This document shows, piece by piece, positions 5,181 to 62,798 of a DNA stretch of 64,000 bases (the stretch's first letter is position 1; each line of letters begins with the position of its first letter). Below the pieces are notes generated by a model. It did not search any database. It was not told the DNA's origin and saw only the letters and a list, made by a program, of their open reading frames with translations. The DNA is taken from NCBI RefSeq assembly GCF_006345805.1, contig NC_043004.1:80042001-80106000 (forward strand), given 5' to 3'. Origin of the DNA: Octopus sinensis. Its lineage: Eukaryota. The position numbers were made by a program, and so were the translations under genes.

Positions 5181-5535
5181 ATGCTTTGCTTCTCAGTTAG
5201 TCACGACATTCATATAGCAAATGTTTACGTAATTATTTTCTCAATGCTATTATTCCAAATATGCTTGGGCATTAATGTAGCATTCAGAGAATATTATGGG
5301 ATTCGTGTTCCACCTCCTCTAAATGCCATTCCAGAAGATGACAAATTAATTCAGATGTCAAACATTCGATCACGAATTGAGTGCTTCTCTCTTTGTATGA
5401 CATATTCCGAATGTGGTATGACTATTTACAGCGTTTCCGAGAAAGTATGCATCCTGCGTAAAATCAAGCAATTACCTGGTGCCTCATCGTTCATCGACAT
5501 TCCTGCAAACAGTATTTACACCATGCTACAAGCCC
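5181..5535 (+). CDS. Lectin gene copy 1, exon 1: signal peptide + PAN/apple-like module
   Basis: Hydrophobic N-terminal stretch VYVIIFSMLLFQICLG; C-x3-C-x5-C-x11-C motif (IECFSLCMTYSECGMTIYSVSEKVCIL); phase-1 donor GTGAGT at 5536; near-identical paralog at 47976. Confidence 0.8.
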
Positions 5536-7117
5536 GTGAGTAGTGTTTTGAGATTCTTTTCTATTTTACATGATGTGTATATATTTACTTTCCATCATCC
5601 TCTAGTAGACCCTCTTCAAGGAAACCAATGTTCAAAGAATAGTTATGTATTTCTTTTCTATTATTCTTTACCTTCCACCCATTCTGAATGTTCTTCTAAT
5701 TGAAGCAGCATCAGTCATATCCCTAACTATGTTTTTGACCTTTTGCTTTCCATATATTTCTTTCAGATTAATTTACGTTTCCCCTTAAATGTGTTGTTGT
5801 TGCTGTTCTTGTTGTTGTGGAAGCTATGGTTAATCCTGATAGTTAATGGTTAATCCTTAATATGATCAAAGGCATTTCCACCGTAATTATCTCATGTGTT
5901 TTAGTGCTTTCTAGAACATATATCATCTTATATGTTCTTTCTCTAAGACGAGGATATGATTTCAGTGAGGTTTGGCTGTTCGTTATAGAAGGTCGAACGA
6001 ACATAGAGAGATTTCAATTACACTTTTTTCTATTCAACGTAGATGACAGAAAATACATTTTAGGGTACTGTACAGTGAAATTAAACTCAAGATAGCGTCT
6101 TAACCGCGCAAATACTACCACTGTGTTATCATTCTATTGTATTCAAAGTATATGGCATAGCGTGCACACAGCATTTCTTAATTTAGTCATTTATTACAAT
6201 ATTATGGTTGTTTATTTCGTAAGCTTGCATGCACTGTCATCTCTCACAGGTTCATTATACTTGCATTTTAATTACACTAACCTTCACACTCATATCATTG
6301 CTGGATTTCTTTAATGAAATACCTCAAAATTTACAAATGAATTATTCTACTGTTCTCCTGTTCTATCTTCAGACGTAATGTCTTCGCTGAAATCGAAAAT
6401 AGTTGTGAACTGTTTCATTAGATTTCCCCAAATATTTCACCACAAACTTCGGGAATATCTTGTAGTATAATATAACGAGGGACAGATACTAAGCTGTATT
6501 TACCAAATATTTCATCTCACATTACATGATATGAAGAAAGCGAGAATAAGAGAGAGTGAGACAGAGAAAGAGAGATAGATTGAGAGAGACAGACACACAG
6601 ACAGAGGGAGAAAGTTAGCAATGAGTGCGTGCTTGCAGTTAAACTAACTTTCTACTGTTGACGTAAATCCTTCAAACAAAAGAATCACTTAACCACGTAT
6701 GCGTAGCAGGAACAACATTAACTAATCTTATACACGCACAACTCTAGGTAAGTTTTCAATAAACGTATAGATTATTGTTTCTAAGATGAGCACTAGGCCA
6801 GAAACAAGACCAAATACTGGTGTCTATTTTATCAATACAACTGTCGTATGTTTGCTTTTATGTAATAATATCTATTTCTTTTTCAATAGTTTTGCTTTTT
6901 TGTGTCATTGTACATGTTGTCAATAGTTTATTTGCTATCGCCAATATGTTTTACACATACTATTATACTACCATAAATATGCAGCTTACTAGTTGTTGTA
7001 TCGCACGTTCGAGGTACGATATAACGGGATAATAATAACGTATTAGCAAATCGTTCCACTCAAGATGCTAGTATTGACCCTCGACAATACGCTACTCTCG
7101 GCTTTTTCTCTGCTTAA

Positions 7118-9471
7118 TTCTTTATTAGGCACAAAGGCCCGAAACACAGAGCGGACGGTACAAGGACAGACAGAACAATACAAGTGGGGAGAAAAAATTA
7201 TATGAAAAATGAAAGTGAAATGGCCACTCGAGTCCCACTTTCGGGTGGTTACATTTAACTGGGGGTTTTTTCAGTTTTTTTTTTATATCAAACTTTCATC
7301 AATAAAAATTGTACTTACTGTATTTACTAGTTCAGGCGCTGTATTATGTCTTTGTAATCTACGACTGGAGGTAGGGTTCTGTTTCCACCTCCTCTCCTAA
7401 CGGGTCAATTAGTGAACCAAATATTTTATCTTAATTTTGTGTATTTTTCTCCGTCTATTTATATACATTTGGTGTATTCCGATTTCGCCTCAGCCAGAAA
7501 TTTCACTCTGAGTGTTTTGTTTGTCTGCATTTAGGTCTGTATTACTACATGGGGTACTGGGGATGTATTTCTTCCGTTATCACATTTAATTCTTCTTGGC
7601 TGACTTGGACCACCTTTTCCAGTCCATAACTCCAACAATTTCAACAATTTCACTTCTTAGTTCTTGTGACATGCAATATTTTGATTTCTTCCGTTTCATA
7701 AGTTATGGCTACTACCAACCATGCTTCCTCTATTTCTGGCGGTATCCTGCCAACCTTAATGCTCACGACTCTTTAACCGCAGTAGGTTGGCAGGAGCGCC
7801 CATTCCTGTGATCTCAGAGGTACAGTGGAGTGATTGATTGCCTCTTCTTCCGTGGTAAACCTCACCTGCACTTTGCCGTACTTTCTTCCTCTGGTATAGC
7901 AGATGGTTACACTTTTGACATTTTCTAGGCATATTTCTATAGCCTCCTCCGTCACTATCTCAATTTTCTTGCTGGATAAGGACAGCGTTCTGTAGCACAC
8001 TGTCCTCCTGGTACTATTGGTCATTTCTTCTGGAGGAGTCAATCGCAGGCTTTCCCCTCCTTCTTGAGCAGCTCCCAGTGACTTCCAATCTTCTCGAGGT
8101 CTGTTACTACCTATCGAAGTAGTCTTTTCGTTTTCTTTTTCTATTTTATATTAAAAACTTGCTTACTTGTTTTACCAGTATACGGTTTCAAATCGTCATA
8201 GTCCACGACTAGAGGTGAGTCATCATATGCCACCTCCACTCCTAATGGGTCTATGTTTGTCCCGAACCATTCCTTTAAGTTAGCATATCTTTCCGTGTCT
8301 ATTAGTATACGTTTAGTGTTTTCTGTATATTCTTCAACCGATAATTTCACTCTAATCACCGATTTGAACATGGTGATTTTTCGTTCAATTGCCGTAGATT
8401 TTGTGTATGTCACAATAAGCGCTTTGTTTTTTCAGGGCCCTTTGAGGGACTGTGTGTTATGCTTGTCTGTTTGTCTACAAGGTGAACTCGGACTATCTGG
8501 AGTTGATTCCTTTTTTTATTGGTGTTACTGGTGGTGATATTTGCTGTGTGAGTGTAAAGTGTATCGTGTGTTTGCTGTACAATGTCTTCTGTTTTACTAT
8601 TTTTCTTTTTCTTTTTTCGACTTTTAGTGGGATGTATTCACTGTTTCCTTTCTCATTCTTTTGGGTACTTCTGTAAATCCCTCTTCTTCTCTATCCTCCG
8701 TACACTTCTCCTGTGCGGGGCTTGTCATTTCGGTACTCCGACTTTGTTCATACAGATTTTATCTAGTTTCATTGTTTATCTGGGGGCACTTTTTTATGTG
8801 CCCCTTCCGTCTACTTCCGTAGCAAGTGAGGAGTCGCTCCTCCACTGAAACATTTAGTGTTCCCTCATCTGGGAGTTCAATTACTTCTGGAATCTCGTTC
8901 ATATCCGCCAGAGTTATGTGAACCAGCAACTCAAGGCCGTGTCCCCAGCAGTTTAGTTTCTGCGTTCTTGTAGCTGACCCTATGCTGAGCTCTTCTTTTG
9001 TAGTGGATAGGACTGCCGCCGCTATCCATTTCTTCTTCATTTCCGGAGGAATCCTACCAACCCTTACTCTGTTTATTCTTCTACCCAAGTAAGTTGGCAG
9101 GAGCTTCCATTCCTCATTTGCAATAGATACAGTGGAGTTCTTAATGCTTCTTCTGTTGAGATGAATCTCACCTCCACTGTACCGAATTTCTTTCCACGAG
9201 TGTAAGAAGTTTTTTTTTCCTTAATACATCTTTCGATATCCTACTCTTTCGCTACTTCCATTTTTCATTCTTTCGTGTTGAGTGTCCTGTCAATAACAGT
9301 TTTCATTTCTATTTCTGCTAACAAGTCTTCAGGAGGAGTCAGCTTTACTTTGCCTCCCTCCTTTTCGGTAAACTTCTTACATTTTCGCAGTTTATCAATA
9401 GGTACATTCATTTAACCGGCTACTGCTGCGTAGCTTCCACTTTTCTTTGCACCTGGCATCTCCACCTCCAT
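7118..9471 (-). mobile_element. Decayed putative ORF1-only (HAL1-like) non-LTR element with two tandem ORF1-like cassettes and a Tx1-type 3' tail
   Basis: Unit A (9471->8141): ME..SYAAVA, LTPPE, YTRGKKFG, LLPTYLGRR..GRIPPE, degenerate knuckle CYGSRRKGHIKKCP, C-terminal IDPLG.EV. Unit B (~8110->7300) repeats LTPPE, YTRGRKYG, LLPTY, GRIPPE and IDPLGEEV. The tail ends GTGCCTAATAAAGAA. No EN/RT sequence seen between. Confidence 0.6.
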
Positions 9472-9816
9472 TCCTCGTGCAGATAGAGAAGCAACAAAAA
9501 GTACAAGCTTGCTTAACAAGCTATGTGTTTAAATTACATTAAAAATTCGTCAAACAATTCAACAAAGTAACAATTTTTACAAACAACAGTTCAAAGATTC
9601 AACAGTTCAAAATTAACACCAACCTGGGCCGAAACCAAAATTCAAATAAATTGTATACAAGATCTAAGAACTTTGGGAAAAATAAGCCAACAATTGGAAT
9701 TCAACATGGAACTGGAGCAATAGAATGAATACATTACAGAATTAATTCTCATCCGTCTTTAACCTCAGATCGAACACCACCGAGGCATATAGTCATTATA
9801 GCCGTATCATGGTGAA

Positions 9817-61748: not shown

Positions 61749-62395
61749 TTGAATTTTGATTTTGGTTTTAATCAACACGATATCAATGCTTATAAGAGAA
61801 TGCTAGAGTCGATTAAATTGATCAGCGAATTCATAGCAGATATTCTTTTAAATTTCAATAACATGAAAGGTTAAGTCTGTTTAGTGTTGAATTCATATGC
61901 AAACAGAAGAAATAGATAATTTACTTGTTATATTAGCCAGCATCAGCAAATGATTAGCTGTTCATTTCATTTTATATATGAAAAACATTAAAACCTGGTG
62001 TACGTTGAAATATTTCGTTACCGTTCCCGAAATTTTCGTCCCGGCATGATCGGGGAAGAGATTTCAGTAACTATTTTACTGACGTATATAACAAATCAAC
62101 TTAAATTAATATATACGCTAGTTTATGTGGTTCATTTTGCCACAATTCAAAATATTTCGCTATTTTTCACGTAGCCTAAAAACACTGCGCACACAAGCGG
62201 ATAACATGTGGATTTTAAGTGTGCAGCGACATAGTGAGTAAATGTATGTACACTGAGTGATCGTTCATCTTACAAGAGACGGTACTCAACTGTTTCTCGA
62301 AATGTAGTATACAGTCAAGTATACGCCATGCAAACACAGATAAGACAGGATGTCATAAGTGATTCGGGCTAAATATCAACAACCACAACAGCAAC

Positions 62396-62467
62396 TACTA
62401 CTACTACTACTACTACTACTACTACTACTACTACTACTACTACTACTACTACTACTACTACTACTAC
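62396..62467. repeat. (CTA)n microsatellite
   Basis: Direct reading; the paralogous position (~14057-14070) has only ~4 units. Confidence 0.95.
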
Positions 62468-62559
62468 AAAACAATATAATGCTCAAACATGCACCGAATC
62501 ATAACAAATCTGTGCAAGACTATTATTAATCAATATTTTTATTTTCTGTTTGTTTTCAG

Positions 62560-62798
62560 CTACGACGGAATATCACGAATTTCATATGGGATTATGCAAA
62601 GATCTTAGCAAGAAAGTCTTTGTATGGCAGGATGGAGAAGCACTTACATATTCTCAATGGGGACCTACAGAACCCTCGAATCATGGTGGGATTGAAGACT
62701 GCGGTAGCTTTAATCCCTACATCAATTATAGATGGAATGATATTGGTTGCCACGTCCTGAACAGTGGGACACAAATATGCGAGATAGTTGTTCGATAA
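62560..62798 (+). CDS. Lectin gene copy 2, exon 3: C-terminal half of C-type lectin domain (EPS / WND)
   Basis: Acceptor TTTTCAG|CT in phase 1; FHMGL, FVWQDG, WGPTEPSN, EDC, RWND..C, IC; stop TAA. The three exons total 768 nt, in frame. Confidence 0.88.

Follow-up and report, generated by a model that had tools for sequence, protein, structure and literature searches.

Tandem PAN-superfamily and C-type lectin genes of Octopus, with paralog exchange in exon 1 and a divergent binding-site exon

Two tandem lectin genes and their family

Two intact three-exon genes are found on the forward strand of a 64-kb stretch of Octopus sinensis DNA (NCBI RefSeq assembly GCF_006345805.1, contig NC_043004.1, positions 80,042,001 to 80,106,000), which is called the window here and from whose first letter all positions are counted. 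Gene A (5181-14432) and gene B (47976-62798) encode proteins in which a PAN-superfamily module is followed by one C-type lectin domain (CTLD) (Table 1). All four introns are of the GT-AG type and in phase 1. An in-frame TAA lies 9 nt 5' of the ATG of A, and an AATAAA signal lies 193 nt downstream of the stop codon of B. A tblastn search across the window found no additional copy of the exons of either gene. The same splice rule, applied to other species' loci, gave three RefSeq proteins with every residue exact (XP_036361367.1, or P0001, P0004, and P0005), so the splice junctions agree with models from an independent pipeline. All 11 modelled genes of the family share one plan, with an exon 1 of about 350 nt, an exon 2 of 180 nt (177 nt in one paralog), and an exon 3 of about 240 nt. 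The exact A and B proteins had no match in a collection of 15 billion proteins.

The pair belongs to a family that extends over about 1.2 Mb of one chromosome and is restricted to Octopus in the databases searched. Protein searches gave 22-26 matches, all of them from O. sinensis, O. vulgaris, and O. bimaculoides. The family members are named "macrophage mannose receptor 1-like" in RefSeq, and one is named "perlucin-like". In O. sinensis, the sequence colinear with gene B is at about 159.77-159.81 Mb of CM016859.1 (L001). In O. vulgaris, the full arrangement of A, spacer, and B has a colinear counterpart on OX597814.1 at about 157.27-157.34 Mb (L003/L005), with 92-99% identity over about 48 kb. 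Further O. vulgaris paralogs, in both orientations, are located at 157.02, 157.09-157.13, 157.15-157.18, 157.52-157.57, and 158.20-158.23 Mb, and paralogs on O. bimaculoides CM046601.1 are located at 150.95 and 151.38 Mb. Over the 3' half of B (44000-64000 compared) the window agrees with L001 at about 100% identity, and over most of A (3748-15677) it is 98-100% identical to L003. It falls in the O. vulgaris/sinensis group and equals neither reference assembly from end to end.

Several annotated family members have unusual structures. Three O. vulgaris models on OX597814.1 (P0017, P0019, and P0020, at L007, L009, and L010) skip the 180-nt exon 2, and an exon 2 with GT-AG sites is present in the DNA at all three loci. 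The exon is phase 1-1, which keeps the skip in frame; the models may be misannotated or may record genuine exon skipping. In P0007, P0011, and P0014, from O. vulgaris and O. sinensis, a B-like exon 3 is broken after "...EDCGS" or "...ENCVS" by "...DPS(V/I)EPNPGP...". This is a 2A-like peptide motif of the kind found in some retrotransposon open reading frames (ORFs), and these three look like transposon-disrupted family members. An extra piece resembling the CTLD exon 3, with 40-47% identity to the family, lies on the reverse strand of L006 at 29294-29497, 8 kb downstream of O. bimaculoides P0004.

Table 1. Genes, exchange tracts, mobile elements, and repeats of the window
Feature	Positions	Strand	Description
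Gene A	exons 5181-5535, 10865-11044, 14188-14432	+	259 aa
A exon 1	5181-5535	+	Start codon, signal-like hydrophobic segment, PAN-superfamily module; phase-1 end at GTGAGT donor
A exon 2	10865-11044	+	180 nt, phase 1-1; N-terminal half of long-form CTLD (C0, C0', WxxA..C1)
A intron 2, 5' and middle part	11045-12323	+	Aligns with B 57084-57175 and 61078-61936; Kimura two-parameter (K2P) distance 0.20-0.27; interrupted by repeat 11207-11564
A exon 3	14188-14432	+	C-terminal half of CTLD: YIGL, NPS, ENS (cysteine 2 to Ser), WND, then stop
Gene B	exons 47976-48324, 56904-57083, 62560-62798	+	255 aa
B exon 1	47976-48324	+	Signal-like segment and PAN-superfamily module
B exon 2	56904-57083	+	180 nt, phase 1-1; N-terminal half of CTLD
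B exon 3	62560-62798	+	C-terminal half of CTLD: HMGL, EPS, EDC, WND, then stop
Informative sites	4683-4887		Six consecutive L003-type sites
Minimal exchanged tract	4924-5450		35 consecutive L002-type sites; covers most of A exon 1
Informative sites	5589-6469		Mixed
Informative sites	6477-7159		Mostly L003-type
Informative sites	7161-7320		Seven L002-type sites
Patch around B exon 1	47500-49250		88-95% identity to O. sinensis ortholog
A-B spacer	14433-47975		33.5 kb, rich in transposable elements
Non-LTR (long terminal repeat) long interspersed nuclear element (LINE) ORF	21427-24348	+	Uninterrupted, 973 aa; endonuclease and reverse transcriptase (Pfam); flanked by (TA)n runs
LINE fragment	47-2222	+	Pfam RVT_1 and zf-RVT
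LINE fragment	17823-19829		ORF without Pfam match
LINE fragment	32521-35514	+	RVT_1 at 34549-35511
LINE fragment	38654-40108	-	ORF without Pfam match
Mariner Mos1-like transposase, C-terminal fragment	47132-47353	+	PDB 4mda/3hos, E 5e-13; about 620 bp upstream of B start codon
Tc1/Sleeping-Beauty-like fragment	20557-20961	-	Weak, E 0.004
Dispersed repeat of about 370 bp, three copies	11207-11564, 26945-27321, 46543-46911	+	73-78% identity among the four copies
Dispersed repeat of about 370 bp, fourth copy	35737-36078	-

Domains of the encoded proteins

The C-terminal part of each protein is a CTLD, and the residues expected at its binding site are encoded by exon 3. Both proteins pass the gathering score of 22.6 bits for Pfam Lectin_C (PF00059), A with 43.5 bits and B with 55.3 bits. 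Among solved structures, their closest sequence relatives are the CTLDs of DEC-205, PLA2R, and mannose receptors (E 2.5e-18 to 7e-14). The domain is split across exons 2 and 3, and exon 3 holds the motif at the EPN position (EPS in B, NPS in A), the Glu after it, and WND. B has all six cysteines of the long-form CTLD (C1-C4, C2-C3, C0-C0'). In A, a single TGT to AGT change has replaced cysteine 2 with Ser, and there is an extra Cys upstream of YIGL. Both changes are common to A and its paralog C. The mature A protein has an odd number of cysteines. A keeps WND, WQNGE, GLCKD, and cysteines 3 and 4. The five ligands of Ca2+ site 2 are E/Q-P-N/D, E, and N-D of WND, with spacing compared to that of rat mannose-binding protein A. 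B has four of the five canonical residues (EPS...E...WND) and A has three (NPS...E...WND), and neither has the complete five-ligand set of the EPN/QPD type. The motif at the EPN position varies among the paralogs (EPS, NPS, CPD, SPD, RPD), with Gly also found before P-D, and the paralogs with P-D have Q in place of E. Since A lacks cysteine 2 and two of the five Ca2+-site residues, ordinary Ca2+-dependent sugar binding is not assumable for it, and judging from the sequences it cannot be assumed across the family.

The N-terminal module belongs to the PAN superfamily. The best Pfam family for 16 of 17 octopus modules is PAN_1 (PF00024), and paralog P0003 has a precomputed match to it. A profile built from the 17 modules was searched against 1.84 billion representative proteins and matched 30 proteins. 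Outside Octopus these were multi-PAN proteins only (E 1e-12 to 1e-4), and all eight of the non-octopus matches that were scanned are strong PAN_1/PAN_4 repeat proteins. Comparison of the module with 24 Pfam-confirmed PAN repeats by hhalign gave a probability of 97.7% and an E-value of 1.8e-12, in a test that is partly circular, as the repeats had been selected for their resemblance to it. An AlphaFold model of the exon-1 module is of moderate confidence, with a mean predicted local distance difference test score (pLDDT) of 67.6 and 82-87 in the core, and its order of strand-strand-helix-strand-strand-strand is that of PAN domains. All of the top Foldseek matches to this model are PAN/apple domains, with template modelling scores (TM-scores) on the query of 0.51-0.58. 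They include SML-2, MIC4, the HGF N domain, plasminogen, and factor XI/prekallikrein; their E-values are weak (at least 0.014) and their identities are 12-19%. Four invariant cysteines of the module align with the PAN core cysteines. No conserved Cys pair corresponding to the outer first-last disulfide of strict apple domains, as in factor XI and prekallikrein, was found in the 84-residue module, and the paralogs differ at its position 1, which holds C, F, L, S, or Y. Because the four core cysteines are kept and the outer disulfide is absent, the module is described as PAN-superfamily and not as a strict apple domain.

A first-pass annotation of this DNA had proposed two in-frame three-exon models with identical phase-1 structure, encoding a PAN/apple module and then a CTLD, with the EPN-type and WND motifs in exon 3. 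The same exon boundaries were recovered here, and Pfam, profile, and fold comparisons bear out the domain order and the position of the motifs. The PAN-fold match that it named as a check was found with the AlphaFold model and Foldseek. Its PAN/apple label holds for the superfamily and fails for a strict apple domain. Its amino acid identity counts between A and B were also reproduced, at 75/84 in the mature PAN-like part (75/83 in the earlier count), 49/60 in exon 2, and 38/79 in exon 3. The immune-type role that it proposed for the family, and an effector or oligomerization role of the PAN module, are conjectural.

The PAN module is under purifying selection (dN/dS, the ratio of nonsynonymous to synonymous substitution rates, of about 0.3-0.4). 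Judged by the modelled fold, it may serve as an additional binding module and not as an effector, because its best structural matches include galactose-binding apple lectins. A full-length AlphaFold model of P0001, the O. sinensis ortholog, based on an 11-sequence alignment, had a mean pLDDT of 33.7, and no inter-domain geometry is claimed from it. A and B each have a lone hydrophobic stretch at residues 15-30 approximately (up to 3.4 in an 11-residue Kyte-Doolittle window) and none after residue 40. Secretion of the products is therefore plausible from the sequence, and a type II membrane anchor may be the alternative. Two much larger proteins match the module profile: P0027 (O. sinensis XP_036361601.1, 2643 aa) with 11 PAN-like repeats (E 1.6e-12) and P0023 (5928 aa) with 40 (E 2.5e-65). 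The module of the lectin family may be related to these proteins or derived from them.

Divergence between the two genes

The difference between A and B is unevenly distributed among the exons, in synonymous as well as nonsynonymous sites. In Nei-Gojobori estimates, exon 1 has dN of 0.09-0.11 and dS of 0.165-0.25 (dN/dS 0.43-0.54), exon 2 has dN of 0.092 and dS of 0.21 (dN/dS 0.43), and exon 3 has dN of 0.445 and dS of 0.70 (dN/dS 0.63). The K2P distances are 0.10-0.11 in exons 1 and 2 and 0.50 in exon 3. The non-coding DNA is mostly far more diverged than exons 1 and 2. The distance is 0.41 in the 190 bp upstream of the ATG and 0.44 downstream of exon 3, and intron 1 can be aligned only over some 12 nt at the 5' end and some 29 nt at the 3' end. 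In intron 2 the distance rises from 0.20 to 0.27 and then 0.39 towards exon 3. The alignable non-coding DNA beside exon 3 (0.39 upstream, 0.44 downstream) is thus about as diverged as exon 3 itself. As a control, paralogs G and H reach dS of 0.3-0.6 in all three exons, so exons 1 and 2 have no intrinsic synonymous constraint. For scale, dS between O. vulgaris and O. bimaculoides orthologs is mostly about 0.05-0.16, with one exon at 0.38.

Since dS in exon 3 rises together with dN and the alignable neighboring non-coding DNA is about equally diverged, homogenization of exons 1 and 2 is favored over selection on exon 3 as the source of the pattern. The contrast between A and B is mainly a difference in coalescence depth. 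The earlier reading had been selection or conversion, with exon-3 dS scaling with dN and matching intron divergence named as the outcome that would point to conversion of exons 1 and 2. That outcome was found. For A and B, conversion or mosaic ancestry is upheld; on recent branches, positive selection on exon 3 is suggested and unproven.

Exchange between paralogs

Traces of exchange are seen directly at exon 1 of A. Exons 2 and 3 of A are 100% identical to those of the syntenic O. vulgaris gene (L003). Exon 1 is identical at 355 of 355 positions to another O. vulgaris paralog (L002), and 94.4% identical (20 differences) to the syntenic L003. In 250-bp bins, the window is L002-like up to about 5500 and L003-like from about 6250. 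The 144 positions at which L002 and L003 differ were used as informative sites, and they alternate between the two types in several blocks (Table 1). The run of 35 L002-type sites was not reached in any of 20,000 shuffles. The surroundings of exon 1 of A are a patchwork and do not have one breakpoint.

A similar patch is found around exon 1 of B, where identity to the O. sinensis ortholog is reduced. The flanks are mostly 96-100% identical to that ortholog at 44000-47250 and about 100% identical at 56250-64000. The core of the patch (48000-48750) has 97-98% identity to the O. vulgaris copy. The nucleotide sequence of B exon 1 agrees at 95.1% with the O. sinensis ortholog and at 98.6% with the syntenic O. 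vulgaris copy, and exons 2 and 3 of B are 100% and 99.6% identical to those of O. sinensis L001.

One unequal crossover within intron 2 could also have produced genes with a recent exon 1-2 block and an old, foreign exon 3, as a replacement of the exon-3 cassette. With both introns in phase 1, every combination of exons stays in frame, and different combinations do occur among the annotated proteins, such as P0002, in which a B-like exon 1 is joined to an A-like exon 2 and an exon 3 of a third kind (E-type). The stepwise divergence of intron 2 would also be expected. However, there is no contiguous exon 1-2 block between A and B, as exon 1 is an isolated island of similarity between an unalignable intron and diverged upstream DNA, and the informative sites near exon 1 of A alternate in patches of a few hundred bases. 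A history of one crossover is therefore unlikely.

Selection on exon 3

Exon 3 is less constrained than exons 1 and 2 among recently separated genes. For A, C, and D, which are young paralogs, every exon has a dS of 0.05-0.17, and dN/dS in exon 3 is 1.39, 1.73, and 2.86. A Goldman-Yang-type maximum-likelihood fit was pooled over a star tree of A, C, and D and the ortholog pairs of G and H. The pooled dN/dS ratio (omega) is 0.43 for exons 1 and 2, significantly below 1 (p=3e-5), and 1.52 for exon 3, with a likelihood-ratio statistic of 20.3 for the difference (p=7e-6). When exon 3 is divided, omega is 1.24 in the strand part and 1.65 in the loop part, and neither value is significant. The proportion of nonsynonymous differences (pN) in exon 3 was also compared with the divergence of 800 bp of non-coding DNA on its flanks, which was taken as neutral. 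It is 0.235 in the A-D pair (flank 0.100, p=4e-6), 0.166 in C-D (flank 0.079, p=4.5e-4), and 0.155 in A-C (flank 0.124, p=0.15). Conversion of the D exon 3 by an E-type paralog was considered and rejected, as the two share just a 6-nt deletion and a few sites and D otherwise follows C. The conclusion is that net constraint on exon 3 is slight or absent on recent branches. Because the core residues are retained and the ORFs are intact, decay is less likely than a combination of purifying and positive selection. Diversifying selection is suggested, without proof.

These results raise the question of whether diversifying selection on exon 3 explains the A-B contrast alone, with exons 1 and 2 kept similar by purifying selection and no exchange. 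The exon-3 ratios of A, C, and D, obtained with similar dS across exons, the excess of pN over flanking divergence in two pairs, and the variable EPN-position motif would all agree with this. Against it, dS between A and B is three to four times higher in exon 3 than in exons 1 and 2, and the dN/dS of 0.63 is no higher than elsewhere. Purifying selection on the proteins would also leave the low K2P distances of exons 1 and 2 beside diverged or unalignable flanks to be explained, exons 1 and 2 of other paralogs reach dS of about 0.5, and exchange at exon 1 has been observed directly. Selection without exchange is quite improbable as an explanation of the A-B contrast.

Interpretation of the locus

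Overall it is probable that A and B are functional-looking members of an Octopus-specific tandem family in which exons 1 and 2 undergo patchy conversion, while exon 3 escapes it and diverges. Short, patchy gene conversion (non-allelic recombination) between paralogs would repeatedly reset exon 1, and would separately reset exon 2 and part of intron 2. The converted exons would coalesce recently (dS of about 0.2). Exon 3 and its surroundings would escape exchange and retain an old divergence (dS of about 0.7). With little net constraint and a dN/dS of at least 1 on recent branches, the evolution of exon 3 would fit diversification of ligand-binding loops. The products would be secreted, bivalent recognition proteins, presumably for glycans or other molecular patterns, in which the CTLD loops set ligand specificity.

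Several observations weigh against this account. Both proteins score below the Pfam gathering threshold for PAN_1 (21.4 bits), A with 16.4 bits and B with 19.2 bits, and the B module alone reaches 21.0 bits. Expression and the junction of exons 1 and 2 are predicted from homology to Gnomon models. In A, cysteine 2 is lost and NPS is found where EPN is expected, there is no AATAAA or ATTAAA in the 1.2 kb after the stop codon (14433-15632), and no A-type gene model is present in O. sinensis RefSeq. The excess of omega over 1 in exon 3 is not significant, either pooled (p=0.17) or in the A, C, and D trio (p=0.11). The excess of exon 3 over its flanks is absent from the A-C pair and from the G and H orthologs, and the three pairs formed by A, C, and D do not give independent tests. 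Differences imported from unsampled paralogs could mimic such an excess. Part of the apparent exchange could instead reflect interspecies differences or paralogs that were collapsed in assembly.

The defects of A could be read as signs of an unexpressed or non-functional copy, in which case the low identity of exon 3 would result from lost constraint in A only. Besides the altered CTLD residues, the odd number of cysteines, and the lack of a poly(A) signal and of a RefSeq model, this would agree with the absence of the exact protein from the collection searched and with a pooled exon-3 omega that does not differ from 1. However, the ORF and all splice sites of A are intact and are identical in a second genome (L003). 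The Cys to Ser change and the extra Cys are shared with the intact paralog C and are therefore older than that duplication, the other core CTLD motifs are kept, and exon 3 of B is equally distant from every other type. The chance that A is a decayed copy is slim. An assembly artefact, in which A and B are alleles or collapsed or expanded copies misplaced in tandem, is scarcely credible: the region is rich in repeats and no single reference assembly matches the window throughout, but the same A-spacer-B order and spacing occur in the independent O. vulgaris chromosome assembly, the B ortholog is on an O. sinensis chromosome, exon 3 differs at 52% of residues, and intron 1 cannot be aligned between the genes.

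Mobile elements and repeats

The window is AT-rich and laden with microsatellites, and it contains many retrotransposon ORFs (Table 1). The LINE with an uninterrupted ORF in the spacer may have been recently active. In the O. vulgaris annotation, copies of the element at 32.5-35.5 kb are joined to lectin exon 1 (P0021, P0022). One copy of the dispersed repeat is inside intron 2 of A and one is upstream of B; the repeat matched neither tRNAs nor Rfam families, and scanning the whole window for both gave no hits.

Comparison with known systems

The family, hidden by automated names that do not fit its architecture, is a candidate for pattern recognition specific to this lineage. It is also a compact natural example of domain-wise modes of evolution, in which one module is homogenized by exchange between paralogs and the exon for the binding site is free to diversify. 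A wider proposal is that octopuses keep at least ten tandem PAN-CTLD genes as phase-1 exon cassettes, and that ongoing conversion gives rise to mosaic recognition alleles specific to individuals. This is speculative and rather unlikely. If true, cephalopods would have in this family an equivalent to the lectin-type immune families that have diversified in other invertebrates. A survey of C-type lectins in cephalopods described their repertoires as very small (PMC10140915). In the literature searched, no description was found of the family, its accessions, or a PAN+CTLD combination in cephalopods. The genes themselves are already in RefSeq.

The octopus proteins resemble several known lectins in part of their structure. 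The CTLDs of the mannose receptor family (MRC1, DEC-205/LY75, PLA2R1, MRC2) are the best solved relatives of the octopus CTLD and share its long form with an extra N-terminal disulfide. Those receptors have 8-10 CTLDs, whereas the octopus proteins have one and lack the ricin-type and fibronectin type II domains, and apparently also the transmembrane segment and cytoplasmic tail. At 255-259 aa, with only a PAN-like and one Lectin_C domain, A and B do not belong to the mannose receptor family. The name "macrophage mannose receptor 1-like" was given because the closest relatives of the CTLD are in that family, and it is misleading. Perlucin-type and other single-CTLD lectins of mollusks likewise have one CTLD, and they bear a signal peptide, which is putative in the octopus family, but the octopus proteins have the additional 84-residue PAN module and are found in Octopus only in the databases searched. 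For the PAN module, the best structural matches are Sarcocystis SML-2, Toxoplasma MIC4, HGF, plasminogen, and factor XI, with which the four core cysteines align. In contrast to the octopus proteins, those apple-domain lectins, HGF, plasminogen, and factor XI have no CTLD partner, and the octopus module lacks the outer Cys1-Cys6 disulfide.

PAN-type modules and CTLDs are known together in nematodes (PMC5297725). In those secreted nematode CTLD proteins (clec classes of C. elegans) the module is of the CW/PAN_3 type, unlike that of the octopus family. Searches for the full architecture gave Octopus proteins only, and no sequence relationship to the nematode PAN-CTLD proteins was found beyond the superfamily level. 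The nematode and octopus architectures probably arose independently.

The closest parallels in mode of evolution are other tandem lectin and receptor families. The rodent Ly49/KLR genes and the snake-venom C-type lectin-like proteins are tandem CTLD families that undergo conversion and diversifying selection, and their ligand-contact regions evolve fast. The combination of conversion with a fast-evolving binding region is thus familiar, and no general principle is changed by the octopus genes. The likeness to the Ly49/KLR and snake-venom families is in evolutionary mode only, as the taxon and the domain architecture differ.

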